NCBI GenBank assembly: GCA_009859145.1
Contig: VRVR01000033.1
Location: 124,001-188,000 of the forward strand
Origin: Andalucia godoyi And28
Taxonomy: Eukaryota > Protista > Jakobida
Direction of reading: 5' to 3'
DNA: 64,000 bases
Shown here in pieces: positions 18,464 through 61,644 of the stretch. The notes beneath the pieces were generated by a model that made no database searches, was not told where the DNA came from, and was given only the letters and a program-made list of their open reading frames with translations. Numbering within the stretch: position 1 is the first letter of the stretch; every line of letters starts with the position of its first letter. A program made the translations under genes and the position numbers.

Positions 18464-20812
18464 CTATGTTGCGCAGGAACATGGAGGAGGGTGGGCCATT
18501 TCTAACGTCATTTCTAAGACACAGCCCTTCACGCCCTGCTTTGACAAGATCATGCGCAACTGCCGATCCATCTTCATGACGAGCTTTCTAAAAACACGCG
18601 ATTCACCGCAGCGAAGACTGAACAGAATCGAGAACCGCTTTTCTTCCGGACTCTGCGTTTGTTTCTGCAACGGAGACAGCGATGACGGCAACGGTACGGG
18701 CGTCGGAGACTGTGATATGATCACAAAGAATCGCATGGATTCACGAGGATAAAAGCACTTGAGACCGACGGAATCCGACTTGTTTGGCAAGTTTGAATGA
18801 ATCATGACTGTAGGCGAAGGGGCGGTACTGGATTCATCGTCGCTCTTGTTCATTGATTCACGAGAGGACGCGCGGGACATCGTCACCGGAGTGCTGTGTG
18901 CACTGAAGGACCCAGTGGAATTACTCACAGGAAATGACAATGCGTCATCAAAAGCCGAGGTAAAAGCATTGGGGCAACTGTGAACATGAACATTCAAACT
19001 ATCCAGAAGTGAGAGAATCGAAGACTTCACGTCCTCCATGAACGAAACATTCTGAGGAGGAGGAACAAACGAAAGCCGATAGTGGACTAACGATGGGACA
19101 AGCTGCACTCCTTGAAACCATTCATGGGCCACAATGTCGTCGATCGCGGCACGACTGTGCGGGTCAGGGACCAAGATTTTCTCGAGAAGATCCAAGGCAA
19201 GAGGATCCTTCACCAAAGACCGATCCCATTTTGCAGCAGAAATGTTTGCAAACAACTCCGCGACAGTGAAACCGTAGAGAGGATCACATCCGACCAGAAG
19301 CTTGAACAAAATGATTCCTAGCGACCATACATCCACAGCCTGCCCAGAGAATACCTTTCCTTCGACTTGCTCCGGCGCCAAGTGGGACAATGTCCCTGTG
19401 ACAACCGTGGAGAACAAATCCCATCCTTTGGAGAACACTCGGGACTGGCCAAAGTCGGTAATTTTGAGTGTGCCGTCATTGGACAGCAACAGATTCTCAA
19501 GGCGCAGGTCGCGATGGCAGACCCCATGCGTATGACAGTATTGAACACCTTGCACAAGCTGAACAAAATACCATCTTGCGATGCCGGACGGGAGACCACC
19601 AATATCCCCGGAAACGTAGTCTGATAACGCTCCGCCCCCGCAGAGCTCCATGCACAGATAGACAAAATTGTTGTCCACAACGACATCGTAGAGCTCAACC
19701 ACGTTTTCGTGGTGCAGACGAGTCATGATCGCAACTTCCGTGTCAATGCGGGACATGTCTGCACACGACCCAACAGGAATGAGCTTCACGGCTAGTGGCT
19801 TGTCAGACTCTACTACTGAACCGCTGCGAACCACTCCGTACGCTCCTTCTCCAAGTTTGTGGCCAAGGGCAATGGGACCAAGAACCTTGGATTCAATCAG
19901 AATCGTGAAAATGGGTTTCGTTCCGATCTTTTCATCGTGCAGGCTTTCCAAAGACTCGTACTCTCGAAGAACCAAATCTGCCAGAACCAGGAAATCTGAT
20001 TTTGACAACGCTTGCACGCCATCTGCTGATGACGAGTACTCCTTCAGGATGTTTTGGGGTGACGCATCTCCTTCAAAGATGAGGTGGTCGATGCGAATGC
20101 CATCTCTTTCCACGGCCTCCAAAATAATCGTCAAGTCATTCACATCAATAAATCCTTTCTCCTGCGAATCCGCAAGCTTGAAGAGCCATTCCAAAAACTT
20201 TTCTCTCGTTGATCGGCCACCTTGCCAGATTTCTCGGTCGAGTGTTGGGTGCAATGCGAGCTGAATACTTCTCCGCAGGTCTTCCTCTTTCACATCCACG
20301 TCCGTTGCAAAGGGATCGGTCAAAGGTTTGCCCACGGGCGACGAAACCTCACAGCGAGGGATCACAATTTGGTCAGAAAATGACCGACCAAAAGAATGCC
20401 CACTCATGCTCTTACTCTCCGTTCGCATCGTCTGAAATTTGCTAGATGAAGAATGCGACCCGGCATTGTCTTTTGTTGGAGTTGCGAAACCGCCATCGGA
20501 ATCAAACTGTCCACTTTTCTGTCGACCCCCCAGAGAACCAGATGATCCTGCAGTCGTGCTGGTATTCGACGAAACAGCCTCCCTCTTTTCATGAGATTTT
20601 TCTACTTTCTTCGCTAATCTATGAATAAACTTGTCCATTTTTTCGTATTCTTTCAACGAAAGTGCGCCCTCCTTTGATTCATCAAAGAAGAACAGCGCTG
20701 GCACGGACACAAGTCTTAATACATGAGAGGATCGAAGCTCGGACAGAGAAAGCTCGCCATCCTGATCCTTATCCAAGGCTTCAAACGCTCTGCGCGCATG
20801 CGTATTTCCCAT
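18464..20812 (-). CDS. N-myristoylated EF-hand + CAMK-group (CIPK/AMPK-like) Ser/Thr kinase with probable C-terminal KA1-like domain
   Basis: MGNTHA N-terminus, EF loops DKDQDGELSLSE, DESKEGALSLKE and DSQEKGFIDVND, kinase motifs GEGAYG, AVK, HRDLRLEN, DFG and LAPE. Confidence 0.85.
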   Translation of the reverse strand: MGNTHARRAFEALDKDQDGELSLSELRSSHVLRLVSVPALFFFDESKEGALSLKEYEKMDKFIHRLAKKVEKSHEKREAVSSNTSTTAGSSGSLGGRQKSGQFDSDGGFATPTKDNAGSHSSSSKFQTMRTESKSMSGHSFGRSFSDQIVIPRCEVSSPVGKPLTDPFATDVDVKEEDLRRSIQLALHPTLDREIWQGGRSTREKFLEWLFKLADSQEKGFIDVNDLTIILEAVERDGIRIDHLIFEGDASPQNILKEYSSSADGVQALSKSDFLVLADLVLREYESLESLHDEKIGTKPIFTILIESKVLGPIALGHKLGEGAYGVVRSGSVVESDKPLAVKLIPVGSCADMSRIDTEVAIMTRLHHENVVELYDVVVDNNFVYLCMELCGGGALSDYVSGDIGGLPSGIARWYFVQLVQGVQYCHTHGVCHRDLRLENLLLSNDGTLKITDFGQSRVFSKGWDLFSTVVTGTLSHLAPEQVEGKVFSGQAVDVWSLGIILFKLLVGCDPLYGFTVAELFANISAAKWDRSLVKDPLALDLLEKILVPDPHSRAAIDDIVAHEWFQGVQLVPSLVHYRLSFVPPPQNVSFMEDVKSSILSLLDSLNVHVHSCPNAFTSAFDDALSFPVSNSTGSFSAHSTPVTMSRASSRESMNKSDDESSTAPSPTVMIHSNLPNKSDSVGLKCFYPRESMRFFVIISQSPTPVPLPSSLSPLQKQTQSPEEKRFSILFSLRCGESRVFRKLVMKMDRQLRMILSKQGVKGCVLEMTLEMAHPPPCSCAT

Positions 20813-21284
20813 GATACGTCCTATTATTCCCTTTGAAATTGTAGGATTGGAAGAAAACGAAATAAGTCAAAGGAAAAATCAAATGATCAATCACGTGCGT
20901 ACGTGAAATTCCAAAATGCAGTTCGTGTTTTTTTTAAGGCAAAGACAAAAAGGAGATACACGAATTAAGCATGACTCTCTTTTGTTTGTTTTCCCCTTCT
21001 CTAGCAACAGCAACTTATTGTGTATTTTTTGTTCGCTTTGCTTTGTGTGATTGATATGTTTGTTTTTTGTTGTTTTTGTTCTTAATGAATGAAAATAAGG
21101 TAGGACAGAAAAGAAGACCCGTATTTTCTGAACCATCAAAGAAACGGAAGGATAGAGATCGAGTGCAAACCGCGGAGGGGCGAAGTGGACGCTCATTCGA
21201 ACCTCCAAAGTTGATGTCGACAGACGTCAACCATTTCCACTGGGTTTCCGCCTATACACAAACCATCCATTTCCCCGCCGTTTT

Positions 21285-21410
21285 CTTGAGCATTTCGCCA
21301 GCATTGTACACTCACCACGGATAATCATCGCTGATCACCCATAATCAATGTTGCAACCCAACGTGCATAGCATGATTGAGAAGGGGGGTAGGCCCCAACA
21401 CGCCCCTCGG
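21285..21410 (-). ncRNA. Putative Fanzor omega-RNA scaffold / element right end, copy 1
   Basis: Directly 3' of RuvC-III. Shares GCGTGTTGGGGCCTAYCCC and GGGWTGCAASAYTGATTATG blocks with 60198-60310. Carries an 11-bp hairpin with GCGA loop at 21317-21342. Confidence 0.6.
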
Positions 21411-21790
21411 CATGAGAGACGTTCCTAAGATGGATGCAGATGTTGTGCGCGCCGTTCCAATCGCGGTCGACCGTGCATTTGCACGACGAGCAACAAAATA
21501 CACCTTGTTTCCCACACAACTTGCGACGCATTTCCCCCCGCAACGGCCGCACGCTTTAGATGTGCACTCCTCCGTCACAAGTCACAATCGACGCCTGCCG
21601 CCCCGCGATTTCGCATAATTTTTGCAGAGCAGCCGCTGTTGGAATTGATAATGGCCCCGTGTCAACATCTGCCGCGCAGTTGTCGCCTTGGCGATCTTTC
21701 CTGGCGCCGGCCCCGCGTCGGAAGGTGGCGGTGGAGATGTCACAGGTTTTGCGCAGCGTTGCGGGCGTGACGGACATGGTGCGTTGCATG
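21380..21790 (-). pseudogene. Fanzor2/TnpB-like nuclease pseudogene, C-terminal part
   Basis: KIAKATTARQMLTRGHYQFQQRLLCK, then after one in-frame stop VTEECTSKACGRCG (RuvC-II + CxxC), then after a frameshift FCCSSCKCTVDRDWNGAHNI (CxxC + RuvC-III). Confidence 0.88.
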
Positions 21791-22342
21791 AAGAATAAAG
21801 AAATGAAATGAGCGTCGCTGGGCGAGAATGCAACGCGGCGGTGTGTGTATAAGGATTCCATGATCAAAATGGGGCGAAACGAATCGGACATCGTGTGACG
21901 GAGTTGCCAAGATAACAAACGCATGCGCGTGCGCGTGGCAGTGTTTTTTGTTTTTTACGTGCGCTTCAGATTGCTTCCTCATTCAGTGGCACAACAAGTG
22001 CAGCGGTTGTGGTTGTTTTCTTGGCTTAATATAAAAATAAAAAAATTCATCATGAAAAACTGAGAAAGAGAATAAGAAGCAGACTTTTGTCATCAAATCA
22101 ACAGAAGAAAGAACGACGAAAGAATAGAGGGGGGAAAATCAAACACAAAAAACCAAACAAGGAGTGAATATCTGTGATTTTCCTGTTGCGTCATTTCCCT
22201 TCGGACTCCAAAAAAAAACCCTCCTTTCTTCGTTCCACATATTCGAAAATTCTTGAAAGAAACGAACACTCATGAAGAGACTCTGTGGTTTCTTTCTGCT
22301 TTTCTCGAAAGCATCGCATAGGTTGTCCCGAAACAAACTCGG

Positions 22343-25300
22343 CTACGAATTTCTAGAAGAAGAAGAAGCCGAGGCGGTGGGAGCATCTTCGGCAGATGGC
22401 TCTCGTGCAACAATCCTCCAGATCTCAGAAGCCGAAACTTCGTCAGTGGATTCCTCAAGAGAGGGCCGCACAGCAAGCCGCTTGTGCTGGAACACGTCGA
22501 AACTCTTGACGCAGGAAAAAATCAAATCCAGATCGGCATCGGCAGAGAGAATCTTGCGCACATTGTCCTTGTCAGTGTAACAAATAAACAAGTCCAAGAT
22601 GTAGTCCACGGGCGCACCCGTCGAGCTTCGATCTTCAAGAACGATGGGAAGTCGGAACTCCTGCCGAACTCTGGCTTTGATATCTCGCGTGCTGCGGCAA
22701 AGAGAAGCATCAAACTCGCAAACCTTTGGAGACCGATCTTTCGCCGTTTCAAACAACGACACCTTCAGCCAAATGGGTGAAAACACAGCTCTTTTTGATT
22801 TCCGCTTCAACTCTGCTTCCTTCGCCTCTTTCTCTGCTCTGCGTTGCTCGATAATTTCCAAAAGACAATTTCGCAATAAAGCACGGCGAGTCATGTCCGC
22901 TGCCTGTGCATCAACCATCAGCGTAGCTCGAGCACGACTCCACAATAACGAGCCTTCTGTCCACTCTTTCTTCAACGAGAAGGCGACCATCTCTCGAACA
23001 AACGACTGAATTCCCAGCACGCACGTCATTGTATCTTCCCAAGACGAGCAACGAAATACGAGAGGTAATCCACGGGAGTTCGACTGCAACACAGAAAACG
23101 ACCGAAGTTGTTCCTGCTCAAAGCCAACCGTAGCTTCGAACGCCGAAATCGACGCAAACGACCGGTCCATAGAAAACACCTGCTTTCCAAATTCAATGTA
23201 ATCGATCTGCGAGATTGGAATTGTGTGCCTGGGCTTCCCCGAGTCGCCAACGTCCGACCAGCCGAGCAACAGTCTGTCTTTCGCACCTTTCTCTTCGACA
23301 ACCCTAAGCACTCGCTCTTTCCACTTTCCTCCAGCAAAAGATATGGATTTCTCATCCTTTCTCTTGAATGCTTGCAATGAGACACCCCGGATAATTAATT
23401 CTCTTGCAGTTGCTTCGCGAAGCTTCGATCGCGTCGTGAGAAGCCGGACCCTGGTATCTATCCTTTGTTCACGCTCCTCTTTCAGATCCTCTAAAGCTGC
23501 CTTGCGGACATCAGCCTTCAAAACAGACAGTTCTTTCTTTGCAGAAGCAGCCTCTCCAAGCGACGCTTCAAGCATCCCACGCAGCGTCTCAGTATAGCCG
23601 CGTAGCTCCAAAATTTCCTGTCGCAGTGAGTCGGATCGAATATCTTGTGCACGCTGATACAGCAACGGCATCAGCGAAAACAAGGCATCCTTGTCCTTCA
23701 CGGCACGAGAAACAATTGCTTCTGTTTCCTGGATCTTTGCTCTCAATCGGTCCATCTCAAGATCCGAGACAGGAGGAGCCACAATGCTGGACTCTGAAAC
23801 CTCCGTCATTCCAGTAGCAGCTGTTGGAGCCGAATGGGATACCAATGAAAATCCCGTGTCATCAACTTGGTCCAAATCCACCAATTCTTCTGCACGCTTC
23901 GCAGCGCGAATCTTGTACGCTTGAAGCGCAACATCCCAACTGCTCAGTTCGTCTTCGGACTTGCAGGAAAACACAAAAAGGACTTTCTTGGACGTCAGGA
24001 TCTGGAACGCGTGATGTTTCTTGAACATGTGATAATCGACGTGAGAAATCTCGCTTCCATCAAGAGGAATCTCGCCAAGAGGGGCCAGGGAATCTGGAGA
24101 TCGAAAATAGAATATCCTGTCTTCAACCAATCGATGATAACGGTATTTCCAAGAATGGAAGAACGTTCCTCGTTTTGTCAGCCATCCTGCATGGTAAACC
24201 TTGTACATGTTGACAATGGAAGCACTCCCAACCTTTTCTTTTCTATCTATACCTCTCTTCACATCAATCGCAATGGGAACTTGGATGAATTTTTCTCCAA
24301 GCTCGTCCTCGTGAATAGAGTGCTCCAGCTGCTTATTTCGCACCATTCGATAGCGGAGCATCTCGAATTCCGCACCCGAATCCGTTACAAGCTGTTCCAC
24401 TCGTGACAACGAAGACTCAATACACTGCAGATCCACAAAAGCGACGTCCTCTTTTTCTGCATAATCCGGATACATCATTCGTTGGGCAGTGCGAGAAGGA
24501 AGGACAATTCTGGTCAGATTCATTTGCGAAAACGATGAAAGCACGCTATATCGAGACGTAGACAGTCGAGAAGCCATGGACTGGCGAGCCGAAGGCGGAG
24601 ATGTGTTGTCCAAGGAGATGGAGAGCGGTCTTCGACTCGGCACAGACAATAGCGTCCCATCGATCTCTTCTTCCACGACAGTCTTCGAGTTCTTTGGAAT
24701 GGCAAGAGGTGTGTCCGCAGGACCCGGAAGAACAAATTTTTCCGAGAAGAATTTCACAAACAGTGGGATGACATCAACCAAGTGTCCTTTGATATGCATT
24801 CCACCGAAACGCATGGTCATTGAACCTCGATCAAGACCTTTGACGTCCGACCACTCCGAAATGCGGTGCATTCCGTGTTTTCGGACAAAGCGAAAGGCGA
24901 AAAATCCGGGGAAATCCCGAGCATCCAGCGTGCTGAGAAGCTTGTCCAACCGGGCAACATCGAACGCATCCGTAGCAAGCGATTCGAATCCCTTCCACCA
25001 CAATTTCAGACAAGACCGCTCAAACTGGTTGTCGAACATGGATTCGAAGTCATTAAGATTGATTTCTGCAAGCGTCTTTCCAGATGGAATTTGATCAGAC
25101 GATGTGCCCTTGACCGACTCGGAAACATCAGTCACCAGTCTCACAGAAATCGTGGAAACTTGAGACCAAATCCAAATCGGGATCATTGCAATGATTGCAT
25201 CGGCAGAAACAATGCGGTCCTGCACAGTCTTATCCTGCAGTTTTTCGTAGGCATCATGGGCAGTCATCCGGTGAGCAGCTTCGTTCGAGGGATCCTCGCT

Positions 25301-28069
25301 CAGAGGTACCTTCAAATCGACTAACGCAGACTTGAATTCGTTAACCAAATACATGACGCATTGAAATTCCTGCTGTGAAATAATACCCGAGATGTTCTGC
25401 AAGGAAAACCCGCCCGCGATGACCGGGTAACGAGGACAAGACGGAAGACGCCCTTGAATCGCATGCAACACATGATCGGCCTGGAGTTCATAGTTGCCAT
25501 CCGCTCCGTGGAAATCAACCAACTTGAGAGCAGAAGACTTTGGGAAAGGGCGCAGGAAAAGGGACATGAGATCCCAATTAAACGATACTTTCACCGTATC
25601 GAGTCCAGTGTTGTGCGCCGACGTAAGATCGTCCAAAAAGCCTCTTGTTCCCATGGCTGAAAAATCGGTAATATCCGAAGGAAAAACATGAGGGGCAAGA
25701 GTGGACAGAGTGAGTTTTTCTGGAGTCGTAGGGGCGAGCAACTTGTGAGACGCAATGAGGACATTGTCCATCTCGAAGAACATGACAGGGGAATCGGGAA
25801 CCACAACGCGATTCGGCGAAGGGATAACAATGGATAACGACACTACTTCCGCATTTAGCCGAAAAACGGGAGGAGGCTGAACATTCGAAACGGGAGGTCG
25901 AGGCGGACGGTGTTTGTCGGACCACTCCCGCTCAAACTCTCTGCGCCTGTTGTCAAGATCAATCAGGTCCTGAGGAGGGATCTTTCGCGGCCGTTTTAAA
26001 ATGGCGCCATTCAAAAAGGCGACAAGACGCTGAAGAAGGATAATGTCCAACGTAACCTCCACCGGACTCACGATCGCTTCAATTTCCGGACCGACAAGAG
26101 GCGGTGCCGGAAATGGGCTTCTCTGGACAGCTTTCAAACGGAGAAATGACGGATTCTTAAAATCCGCAGGTGATGTACTGGCTGCGACGGCATTCGACGT
26201 CATATGCCTCGATTTCCTCGTATCCCGCACAGTTACGGTGTTCGTGGGATTGAACCTTCTTGACGTGTCATCGTCAATCTCTCCAAACACACCCATATCG
26301 CGTATGACGGGTAAGGATTTAGAGGTTTTTCTGCGCAACGAGCACACGGTGTATTGAACAGTCGTCTTGGAAAAATGTGAAATCTGAATGTTTCGCGGCG
26401 CAGCACGGACAATATATGCAAGACTTCCACTTCGGTCTTGATCCAGGGAGATGATGTTCAGGTCTCCAAGACGAAGCTGAATGAAGAACTCTTCCATGGA
26501 AGTCACACTCGACACTGCCGGCTTAATTGTTCCGAAATTCAAATCAGACCCTTCAATTGCAAAACCGCTCACTCCGTCAACCTTCATTTTCTTGCCAAGA
26601 AACACAACCTCGCCCTTCAGCTCATCCTCGACCAGCTCAAAGCGAAATTTGCCTAAGCCGATATTCAGGTACTTCAATGGATGAGGCTTGACCTTCTTCG
26701 ACCAATTGATTACGTCGATTTCGAGAAGAACTTCTCCTGATGGAACATTTTCGAGTGGCACCCACATTTGCTTTGAAGGCGTGTCTGGCGCAAAACTTTT
26801 CAAGTCCAATTCGAAAGACCCAAGCGGAGCGTCCTTTCCGATTCTATCCCAGTCCCATAATGATACAGAAACTTTGGCGTTTTCTGGATGGCTGATGGTG
26901 AAAGAGTAGTCTTCGGCATCCCACTTTGGATTGAGAGTCTTCTTCTTTGTACGGGAACGGATTTCAAAGGTTTCGTACAACGAACCATCGACTTTGGATC
27001 CCTTTAAGCGCACACGGGCATAGGGATCGGAATATCCATTCTTATCTTGAGCGACGATGTTCTTGGCCTCCAGCAATCGTACATGGACCTTATACTGGTC
27101 TCCTTCGAGAGAAGCACGACCAAAAGAATCCCCCAAGCCATCCAACATTTCCATCAACCAGATGAGCGTCTGTGAATTGACTCTAATCCTAACGTCCGCC
27201 ACAAACAGATCAGTCTGTGCCGCAATAACAACTCCTGCGTCTGTTTTCCTTGTGGTAACATGAATAGAGACTGGAAGATTTTGCAAGAGCGAAATGGCAT
27301 CCTCGTGCCCGTGAGGCACCATGGATGCGGACACGGCACCAACTGTAATCATTCGGAACACGTCAAATTCCTTGGCGCTCTTGCCAGTTTCCCGTGCAGT
27401 CTTCAGATCTGTCACGACATTCCATTCGCTGTCAGTGGCTTGGACAAGCACGTTCTCAATCAAAAGCCGCATAACAGGAGGTGTCCACTCTCCTTTTCGT
27501 TCTTTGTACCGACCAAGCGAACAAACCTCCACTTCCACTCGTTCAATCGATACGTACACTCCGTCAGCAATTTTGTCGCCAAGAGCATATTTTTCCTTTT
27601 CCGGGATATCCTCTTCTTTGGTAGGCGGCTTTTCATCGTCTTCCTGTTTTAAAAGCGTCTCGATCACCGTTGGAACTGGTTCGATAGTCAGAGGCTCCTC
27701 AAGTACAAGCTTCACTCGATCAATAGTGACTCTTACTGGCTGACTTTGAAGCTTGGTGACAGACAACTTGATGTGAATTCGCCCAATGTTGCAAGATTTG
27801 ACTTTAAGCTGCGGCAAACCAAGGATCTCGTCCAGAGCTCGTTCATTCATATCCATGTTTTCAAGCACTGTTTCTCCCGAAAAGGAAGAAAAGTGAAAAT
27901 CCTTCTTGTTGAAATTCTTGAAGAACACCGACAAGTCTACGTTTTTTCCCTCCGCCTCAATTCAAAGTTGAAAGAGCACACATAACCTGTAAGCAGCTAT
28001 CAAAACATCATCTGTATTAGTGAAAAGTAACATACATTTTCCAGCCACTCGTGTGATAATTGCCTCCAT
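22343..28069 (-). CDS. BLTP3/UHRF1BP1-like bridge-like lipid transfer protein with C2 and PH domains; one intron (27937-28035)
   Basis: Exon 1 (28069-28036) spliced through GTATGT...TAG gives MEAIITRVAGKYLSVFFKNF, resembling the BLTP3 chorein-N start. C2 motif DKNGYSDPY...TLNPKW...WDWD and PH motif GWLTKRG..FHSWKYRY...WD.AL are present. Confidence 0.75.
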
Positions 28070-59840: not shown

Positions 59841-60197
59841 TGTTGCTGAGTAAGAGGGGGACGGAAACACTAAAAAAATGAATATGGAGAAATCTTAAGG
59901 AAGAAAAAGAAGAGGAAGGAAAGCGAAAAGAAAACAAGAAAGCGAAAAGAAGAAAGATATATAAATACGATGCGATGACAAGGCAGCCCAGGCCCGCCTT
60001 TCGTTTGCTGGTTGGTTGCCCTCCTGTTGGACTGCGCAGGCCGAAAAAAGAGAATAAGAGAATAATTCTCCGCTAAGTGGTCGGGCATCGTTGCATGGAA
60101 ATAGCAGCTACACAGTGTGGGTTTTTTTGGACGACATTCATCAAGAAAGCGCATGTCTGTCACAAATGATGGATGTGGTGCTCGATAAGGGAATGTG

Positions 60198-60310
60198 TTG
60201 TTTTGAGCGCCTGCATCATCCACTGAAGATGCATATCTACGAATAGATATGCATAATCAGTCTTGCATCCCGTTGCCGGGAAGGGGATAGGCCCCCAACA
60301 CGCCTCACGG
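60198..60310 (-). ncRNA. Putative Fanzor omega-RNA scaffold / element right end, copy 2
   Basis: Same conserved blocks as 21285-21410. Hairpin TCCCG-GCAA-CGGGA and a perfect 11-bp hairpin with TTCG loop at 60229-60254. Confidence 0.6.
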
Positions 60311-60520
60311 CGTTCTTCAGATAAATGTTCCGCGCTCCGTTCCCAATCTCGATCAATCTGTGAGCCACTTTCTCAGCGTGACACGTTGTTCCTGAGAAGG
60401 GGTGCATTTTGATTCCGACGGCCCTAGCAGCAGGCGCTTTCGTGTCCTCAGTTGCAGCGCGATTGATGCAACTGGAGATACGAGAGGAAGAGGCGGTAGG
60501 CATAGTGACACATGGTCTCT
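60309..60520 (-). pseudogene. Highly decayed Fanzor2/TnpB C-terminal relic
   Basis: QIDRDW, then a 1-nt frameshift, then NGARNIYLKNA (RuvC-III). Eroded HYAYR and TED.TKA remnants lie upstream. Confidence 0.7.
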
Positions 60521-61644
60521 TAGGAGGTCTGCGGGACCTAGGAGGCCCTGTATCGAGCGGCGTAGGCGTAGGCGAATGCGTCATCCCAGCGCACTCATGC
60601 CCATATTTGAATTAAAAAAGTGAAACCAACGAATGATAGAATAGATGGCTACACGTAAGCACGAATGCCTGTGAAACAAAACGTGCCAGTGTCGGCCAGT
60701 ATTAACCATGTCTGTTTATGTATACTCCCCCGTATGCATGACAATGGCGTGTTATTAATCAACGGCATGCACGAGAATTTGAAGAAAAAACAAACGAATT
60801 GAAGACTCCTGCGAGCCCTAAGCTCCGGTAATCAAAGGACAATGTTATTTTTCAGTAAAAGACAGGCTTTCCCCCCACAGCATTCAGCGTCTTGGACGGC
60901 AGACGTCCAAAGCGGAGCGTAAGTGGCGTCCATTTGGGGCTCAGATACATCTGATTCTAGAGATCTCAGACTCTTTGCTGATCTTCAGCTGTTCACTCTC
61001 TTTCTTTCCCTTGCCATTCACTCTCATTCGTGTGAGAGGTGTAGAATCATACTGGTCGGCTGATATCAAGAGGAAGAAGAAGAAGAGGAAAAAAGGAAGA
61101 ATGGGCTTCAATAGAAACACTCCACTTCGCAGTTTAAAAAAGCGTGCTTCTTAAGAGCTGCGCTCGAATTCTCGATACATTGCATTAATCTTTTTTTTCT
61201 TAGAGTGAGGGGGACGATATGGCTTCCCGCTTACACCTCCGCCATCTTCCGAAGCTTCCCGCTTTCAGATTTGACGAGCAGTCAATTTTTGGTGCCTCCG
61301 GCCTGTTTTGGGAGGGACAGTGGACAGGATGATAGAGTTTTGCCCGGACGCCGTGCGGTTTTGCGGGGACGTGCGGAAGATAGACTGATGCTTGGCGGCT
61401 ATCAATGGATGGGAGCAACATCCTCTGTCTCCAACAACAGCGTCCGCTGTGCACAAGACCTTTTTGAAAATTCGTGACCGTCTGGCTCTTCTGTCCTCGT
61501 CTCTTTTTCTTTTTCTTTTTCTTTTTCTTTTTCCTTTTCTTTTTCCTTTTTCCTCCAACTGCTGCCCACGGAAAAAACAACAAAACAAAGAGAGAGAGAG
61601 AGACAGAGAGAACGAATCTGTCATAAAATCGCACTGAAAAGAAA

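Follow-up and report, generated by a model that had tools for sequence, protein, structure and literature searches.

Probable guide-RNA scaffolds with compensatory base changes in decayed Fanzor2/IS607 elements of the jakobid Andalucia godoyi

Two regions on the minus strand of the 64-kb stretch of Andalucia godoyi DNA analyzed here (hereafter referred to as the window) are very probably right-end omega/reRNA scaffolds of internally deleted IS607-type Fanzor2 transposons, most likely fossils. We refer to the two copies as relic21 and relic60, and their features are listed in Table 1. The fold, its covariation, the position of the scaffold relative to the nuclease gene and the boundary of the element could all be shown with the sequences compared. 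In both window copies the reading frames are broken, the interior carries large deletions and the pseudoknot is weakened; they are most likely fossils that record past selection.

Table 1. Positions of the relic scaffolds, their structural elements, the associated gene scraps and the flanking ORFs, in window coordinates.
Feature	Positions	Strand	Description
relic21, complete omega/reRNA scaffold region	21296..21404	-	covariance model R1, 93.2 bits, E=2e-17, full model length
relic21, H1	21385..21396	-	GGG 21396-21394, loop GCCUAC 21393-21388 (5' pseudoknot arm), CCC 21387-21385
relic21, stem-loop P2 ("variable hairpin")	21357..21380	-	RNAfold prediction
relic21, P3	21308..21351	-	outer helix ACAUU/AGUGU and 14-bp inner stem, enclosing the 11-bp stem
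relic21, 11-bp stem	21342-21317	-	ATGGGTGATCA 21342-21332, loop GCGA 21331-21328, TGATTATCCGT 21327-21317; 8 Watson-Crick and 3 G.U pairs
relic21, 3' pseudoknot arm GCUGGC	21297..21302	-	pairs with GCCUAC at 4/6 positions; last scaffold G at 21296
relic21, flank at putative guide position (AAAUGCUCAAGAAAACGGCG)	21276..21295	-	placed from the family boundary and the published reRNA layout (PMC10711439)
relic21, frameshifted Fanzor2/TnpB C-terminus	21364..21689	-	residues ~331-430 of P0003
relic21, TnpA N-terminal helix-turn-helix scrap (..ATLRKTCDISTATFRRGA..)	21709..21804	-	~32 codons, IS607-type serine recombinase
Protein-kinase-like ORF flanking relic21	18464-20812	-	782 aa; assigned by eye
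ORF with C2-like segment flanking relic21	22343-27934	-	1863 aa; assigned by eye
relic60, complete omega/reRNA scaffold region	60208..60304	-	covariance model R1, 85.8 bits, E=7e-16
relic60, H1	60295-60284	-	pseudoknot arm GCCUAU 60292-60287
relic60, P2	60281-60268	-	UCCCG-GCAA-CGGGA
relic60, P3	60222..60261	-	outer helix ACUGA/UCAGU and perfect 11-bp stem, UUCG loop; inverted repeat I2
relic60, 11-bp stem	60254-60229	-	ATGCATATCTA 60254-60244, loop TTCG 60243-60240, TAGATATGCAT 60239-60229; perfect pairing
relic60, 3' pseudoknot arm GCAGGC	60214-60209	-	last scaffold G at 60208
relic60, flank at putative guide position (CUCAAAACAACACAUUCCCU)	60188..60207	-	placed from the family boundary and the published reRNA layout
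relic60, Fanzor2 N-terminus scrap (..TPSQEQRVTLRKWL)	60362..60508	-	residues ~12-59 of P0003
relic60, Fanzor2 C-terminal scrap	60267..60359	-	RuvC-III DRDW(+1 nt)NGARNIYLKN..; residues ~398-428

The scaffolds overlap the 3' remains of Fanzor2 genes. The C-terminal scrap of relic21 includes a TSK-CxxC zinc ribbon and the RuvC-III motif DRDWNGAHNI (21439-21468), and, as determined by tblastn, it occupies two frames and is interrupted by one in-frame stop. This sequence matched Pfam PF07282 (E=8e-11), and its best PDB match was 9B0L, the Fanzor2 of mimivirus, in agreement with the preliminary description of this DNA, in which the sequence upstream of the scaffold had been taken for a TnpB/Fanzor C-terminus. 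The TnpA scrap of relic21 was recovered with the TnpA of a related element, L012, as a tblastn query (E=0.008), with 11 of 18 positions matching in the core ATIRKRYDVSSSTLRRWA. In relic60, the N-terminal scrap (tblastn E=0.006; EQRVTLRKWL against EQRITLRKWL) and the C-terminal scrap (tblastn E=1e-4, 58% identity, one 1-nt insertion) are directly joined through an internal deletion. What is left of the gene is ~100 C-terminal codons, frameshifted and interrupted by a stop, in relic21, and ~48 N-terminal and ~31 C-terminal codons in relic60. As these gene scraps show, relic21 and relic60 are not plain 3' fragments but Fanzor2-type IS607 elements that have suffered internal deletions. Second only to a Logan fragment, EukProt ANDGO_08534 (P0002; 78% identity) was the database protein closest to relic21; it is also from Andalucia godoyi and is itself a deletion derivative, the third from this species.

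Both relics are intergenic. relic21 is located in a spacer of ~1.5 kb between two long ORFs on the same strand, both without internal introns, and the long intron-free ORFs of the window are consistent with the compact genome of Andalucia godoyi (PMC7050145). In the intergenic sequence upstream of relic60 (window 61500-61640, minus strand), a (CT)n run comes after a purine-rich (GAAAAA)n/(GGAAAAA)n microsatellite.

Relatives were collected with a near-complete Logan copy, L001 (SRR28211851), as the full-length query, which yielded 825 homologues of the giant-virus R104/Fanzor2 type. The DNA of five of the relatives on metagenome or read-archive contigs (L011, L012 and L090-L092) was compared with that of the relics, together with 77 giant-virus loci, including L013-L017. 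The intact relatives closest to the query were L011 (protein P0003, 69% identity) and L012 (protein P0004, 60% identity), followed by L090, L091 and L092 (~50%). A tnpA gene encoding a protein with Resolvase and MerR HTH domains lies directly upstream of Fanzor2 in L012 (Resolvase 2e-17) and L091, and matching tnpA reading frames were found in L001, L090 and L092. The presence of an upstream serine-recombinase tnpA in these relatives indicates that the elements are of the IS607 type, the known setting of Fanzor2 (PMC3627910, PMC10711439).

Several features of the relatives were recorded in passing. The nuclease gene of L001 is frameshifted, and this decayed copy from another sample passes from the 5' hairpin straight to ..AAUGUGAGGG (1241-1286), P2 and P3 being deleted. 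The Fanzor2 ORF of several relatives has an N-terminal extension (..PFWNE..LWLP.ATDC..SWF.., then KMYPT) that overlaps tnpA in another frame over hundreds of bases (L012, 1-815; L091, 39-857; L092, 1-750; L090, 319-900), and the same motif occurs in the predicted proteins P0006, P0009 and P0066. The +1 frame of tnpA in L012 has no stops, against 3.5 in synonymous-codon shuffles (22 of 5000 of which reach 0), and in L091 and L092 the overlapping frame is open except for the first codons. The overlap may reflect genuine dual coding, or it may result from gene callers having read through an open frame; the word "overlap" is absent from the article by Bao & Jurka 2013 (PMC3627910). The tnpA of L090 carries a 65-nt AT-rich GT..AG insert (669-733) with a branch-point-like UACUAAC motif, the excision of which restores ..VVVTRK|DRLCRF.. 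in tnpA and leaves the overlapping frame of the extension open (..LPER|TDCAD..). This insert resembles a spliceosomal intron, so the L090 element is probably located in a eukaryote. Short-read contigs tend to break at or near the ends of the elements (L012 at 2029; L091 and L011 at 1), a pattern that multi-copy repeats would give, and the L091 contig begins 38 nt ahead of tnpA.

The sequence that follows RuvC-III is shared by the two relics. The motif GCGTGTTGGGG(N)CCTAYCCC is present just twice in the window (21384-21403 and 60284-60303, both on the minus strand), against a chance expectation of 0.01, and GGGWTGCAASAYTGATT is likewise present twice (21343-21359 and 60255-60271, minus strand), against 0.19; the shared minus-strand motifs previously described at this position are confirmed. 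The scaffold begins 35-45 nt past RuvC-III in relic21 and relic60, and likewise in L011-L017 and L090-L092. A covariance model (R1) was seeded with the two relics and two intact relatives. With the speed filters off, the only sites that it identified in the window were relic21 (93 bits) and relic60 (86 bits), the next best having 12 bits, and neither R1 nor tblastn revealed further scaffold or Fanzor copies in the window. With default filters, R1 recovered L013/L024, a giant-virus copy absent from its seed, where it was expected to be (31.9 bits, E=8e-4), and it missed more distant giant-virus relatives, the sequences of which differ. A metagenome-wide scan with the 5' DNA motif gave nine matches, all of which were rejected as chance occurrences (pheA-like, trpB-like, CRISPR and other contexts), and a viral scan with this motif gave zero matches. 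A scan of positions 20900-22000 against Rfam 15 returned chance-level matches only, a result that says little, since this RNA family is seemingly not curated in Rfam.

The "conserved sequence" GUUGGGGCCUACCCC is itself structural: it forms a 3-bp hairpin (H1), the loop of which pairs with the GUAGGC at the 3' end of the scaffold. In the 12 sequences compared, the H1 stem was 91.7% paired and showed compensatory changes, from GGG/CCC to GUG/CAC in L015 and to GAG/CUC in L092. The loop-to-tail pairing was also 91.7% paired in 12 sequences, with compensatory changes at four of the six pairs (variants GCCUAC/GUAGGC, GCCUGG/CCAGGC, ACCUAG/CUAGGU, GCCUAG/CUAGGC and AGCUAC/GUAGCG), counts that are partly circular, because the 3' arms of several relatives were located through their complementarity. 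A shuffle control was therefore run, in which a perfect 6/6 complement was found at ~9% per locus, against seven of the ten intact copies. Three of the six unpaired cells in the 12 sequences come from the window relics, the pseudoknots of which are weakened to four of six pairs in relic21 and five of six in relic60. Thus, the triplets of H1 pair and covary while its loop pairs with the 3' tail, and the structure is a pseudoknot. A plain GGGG-CCUA-CCCC hairpin replacing the long-range helix was considered and rejected, as the stem and the loop pairing both covary. Among the 77 giant-virus loci, the 5' motif was present in 11, and five of these 11 had a perfect pseudoknot.

The terminal stem-loop, P3, consists of the hairpin of the preliminary description and an outer helix. 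The preliminary description reported 11-bp hairpins at matching positions in the two relics, and proposed that the retention of the stem and of its tetraloop class, with a different sequence, reflected selection on RNA structure. The coordinates, pair types and loops of these hairpins were confirmed, and the two stems share alignment columns, with 32 nt between the loop and the final GGCG in both relics. Among the short-range inverted repeats of the 64 kb, the hairpin of relic60 ranks second in length, and its stem is a perfect DNA palindrome; the stem of relic21 was not detected as a DNA palindrome. The inner stem is GCAUGAAUA-UCGA-UGUUCAUGC in L011 and CAGUACUG-C-CUA-GCAA-UAG-A-CAGUACUG in L012, and the inner stems of the copies are almost wholly different from one another (AUGGGUGAUCA/UGAUUAUCCGU, AUGCAUAUCUA/UAGAUAUGCAU, GCAUGAAUA/UGUUCAUGC and CAGUACUG..CUA/UAG..CAGUACUG). 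The outer helix also varies, from ACAUU/AGUGU to ACGCU/AGCGU. Column-wise counting of P3 was confined to four sufficiently close sequences, two of which are the relics themselves; it gave 20 pairs with 89.9% pairing, and nine of the 20 pairs were changed on both sides. The observed values were reached by none of 500 shuffles, and slid controls paired at 27-44%. Independent copies keep the hairpin while its sequence differs, as expected under selection on RNA structure, and compensatory changes were found in every helix when additional copies were examined. However, the retention of a tetraloop class does not hold across the family, as L011 has a UCGA loop.

P2 and P3 hairpins of unrelated sequence were predicted at equivalent positions in 11 of the 12 sequences, the interior of L090 being weak. 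Unconstrained minimum-energy folds converged on a single architecture in L011, L012, L013, L014, L015, L016, L091 and L092, in which a closing long-range helix (GCCUAC/GUAGGC) encloses P2, sometimes a second hairpin, and then the long terminal P3. The fold z-scores of these eight sequences (L011-L016, L091 and L092) ranged from -3.7 to -6.9, and that of relic60 was -4.6. The whole scaffold of relic21 barely beats its shuffles (z = -1.55), and L090 has the closing helix and a weak interior fold (z = -1.2). The primary sequence blocks GCAACAYUGAU and AGUGUA.AAUG are kept beyond the needs of pairing. The shared motif is read as RVGAYP in P0003 and, one frame off, as GVLGPGP in P0004; its DNA also lies in another frame in L017 and L092, and forms part of the 3' untranslated region in L015. 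Some stop codons precede H1, and others are as far along as the 3' pseudoknot arm itself (L092). The use of two reading frames, or of none, and the scattered stops imply that the constraint is not on the peptide, and a peptide-level explanation of the motif was rejected on these grounds.

The homology between the relics ends at ...GGCG (21296 and 60208), beyond which the flanks differ. This point had been suggested to be the end of the element, and the relatives support this suggestion: all 11 of the available flanks diverge directly past the terminal G, and the contig of L012 stops exactly at GGCG. IS607 elements recombine at a dinucleotide and a flanking base is taken into the scaffold (PMC10711439), so the true transposon end may be 1-2 nt inside GGCG; the right end is thus placed to within 1-2 nt. 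By analogy with published reRNAs, the guide would begin at 21295 in relic21 and at 60207 in relic60, reading downward. Alignment of the relics upstream and a motif search gave no usable similarity from which to place the left end, the copies being too divergent in this region. The sequence CGCCTACGCCTACGCC (window ~60559-60574, minus strand), ~350 nt upstream of the right end of relic60, contains two reverse-complement copies of the right-end terminus of the family, GTAGGCG (that of relic60 itself is GCAGGCG). This sequence may be a mark of the left end, or a coincidence, and no equivalent was found upstream of relic21 or in L090.

Published members of the family suggest how such a scaffold would work. 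An intact element would carry tnpA, encoding a serine recombinase, and the gene for a Fanzor2 nuclease, the eukaryotic TnpB; in active relatives, sense-strand transcription running through the 3' end of the latter gene would yield the RNA. The short 5' hairpin (GGG/GCCUAC/CCC) would fold and its loop would pair with the GUAGGC just before the last scaffold base. The pseudoknot arms would thus enclose one or two variable stem-loops, and the long terminal stem-loop would come last. The nuclease would bind this RNA, and the 15-20 nt of flank transcribed past the terminal G would serve as the guide, sending the nuclease to an empty copy of the insertion site.

Among the closest known systems is the reRNA of ISXfa1, an IS607 TnpB element of Xylella fastidiosa, which folds into three stem-loops, with a pseudoknot linking an apical loop (U-130) to A-3; this pseudoknot is needed for activity, is rescued by compensation and is also predicted in Fanzor2 RNAs (PMC10711439). 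As in the elements described here, the ISXfa1 reRNA is located at the 3' end of tnpB in a serine-recombinase IS607 element, combines three stem-loops with a pseudoknot that joins an apical loop near the 5' end to the nucleotides just before the guide, and ends at or one base past the transposon end, by a G-rich recombination core. However, the host here is a eukaryote or a giant virus, the sequences are unrelated, the terminal motif is ..GUAGGCG, and the scaffold is ~97-109 nt long in the window copies and their closest relatives (up to ~150 nt in L016), as opposed to ~150 nt in ISXfa1. The closest solved protein relative of the relic is ApmFz2 from Acanthamoeba polyphaga mimivirus (PDB 9B0L), in which cryo-EM revealed that the 5' end of the scaffold pairs with nt -4..0, with G:C and C:G pairs at -2/-3, and that the long stems are dispensable (PMC11832414). 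This pseudoknot geometry fits the pairing of GCCUAC with ..GGC(G), the RNAs being compared by their published description, and long stem-loops project from a pseudoknot core in both cases, those of ApmFz2 being dispensable. The ApmFz2 scaffold, at 205 nt, has enlarged stems and is about twice as long as those of the clade described here, and the window copies lack a working protein. The reRNA of ISDra2 (IS200/IS605 TnpB), which serves an RNA-guided TnpB, likewise has a right-end scaffold, a pseudoknot core and a flank-derived guide, but its partner is a Y1 HUH transposase acting on single-stranded DNA hairpins, rather than a serine recombinase, and its scaffold ends exactly at the transposon end. 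The window copies resemble non-autonomous IS deletion derivatives (TnpB-only or miniature; Bao & Jurka 2013, PMC3627910) in keeping their termini and losing the middle, but the 3' part retained here is exactly the guide-RNA scaffold together with a RuvC-III/zinc-ribbon scrap.

It has to be considered whether the mini-elements are alive, as guide-only satellites that would be transcribed and whose RNA would be taken up in trans by an intact Fanzor2 from another part of the genome, such that non-autonomous copies would be protected or spread. relic60 would suit such a role: its internal deletion is clean, the one frameshift in its C-terminal scrap is of 1 nt, both P2 and P3 are perfectly paired, five of the six pseudoknot pairs are kept and the fold z-score is -4.6. 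Moreover, P0002 represents a third deletion derivative among Andalucia godoyi proteins, and the published assembly omitted subtelomeric scaffolds with transposon- or virus-like content (PMC7050145), in which an intact copy could hide. However, no intact Fanzor2 nuclease, with an uninterrupted ORF, RuvC-I/II/III and the zinc ribbon, was found in the window, and none from Andalucia was present among the best 120 of the 825 homologues; relic21 has only four of six pseudoknot pairs and a weak fold, and beyond the scaffold the two relics have hardly any DNA in common, which points to insertions that are old and separate. We consider living satellites to be unlikely. If they were to exist, RNA-guided homing would maintain non-autonomous elements in a free-living eukaryote, a jakobid, and the trans-acting Fanzor2 could sit in unassembled subtelomeric repeats, mainly serving elements of the relic60 type.

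We give still less credence to the hairpins being DNA-only sites for transposase binding or synapsis at the right end, akin to the subterminal hairpins of IS200/IS605 and without any role as RNA. Recombinase-binding sites are also required at the right end, the two conserved sequence blocks exceed the requirements of pairing, and the palindromic stem of relic60 would be compatible with a DNA site. However, the transposase of these elements belongs to the serine recombinases, enzymes whose substrate is double-stranded DNA rather than a folded single strand. The structure is also strand-specific: its G.U pairs turn into A-C mismatches on the other strand (47 G.U pairs in the sense orientation versus 23 in the antisense orientation), and the sense strand is the more stable in 11 of the 12 sequences, with a mean difference of -6.1 kcal/mol. 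Furthermore, the loop-to-tail pairing matches an RNA pseudoknot that is experimentally required (PMC10711439). An IS200/IS605 right-end DNA hairpin proper was rejected, given the serine recombinase partner, which is not of the Y1 (HUH) type, and the strand-specific G.U pairs of the stems.

Finally, ordinary coding conservation of the C-terminal tail of the nuclease, with hairpins arising by chance, is highly improbable: with one frameshift corrected, both relics read ..RVG(A/G)..LIM.. and stop at the same column, their variable segments differ by 12 nt, a multiple of three, and several homologues end in G-x-G-(T/S)-Y-P-like peptides, but the sequence is in another frame in P0004, L017 and L092 and untranslated in L015, the stop codons are at very different places and the pairing statistics are far above those of the shuffled and slid controls.

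Right-end guide-RNA scaffolds in decayed elements thus remain the preferred reading of the two regions. This RNA kind is already known and the copies are decayed, so the result is a solid annotation rather than a surprise: the window contains two probable intergenic transposon fossils rather than genes or regulatory RNAs of the host. The result places decayed elements of the IS607/Fanzor2 type in the genome of a jakobid, Andalucia godoyi, and our literature search found no paper mentioning Fanzor together with Andalucia. It also adds to the Fanzor2/IS607 guide-RNA family a comparatively well-supported and unusually compact scaffold: compensatory changes in eukaryote-like and giant-virus copies support its pseudoknot as well as its two stem-loops. 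Together with their RNAs, the proteins of L011 and L012 are candidate small RNA-guided nucleases.
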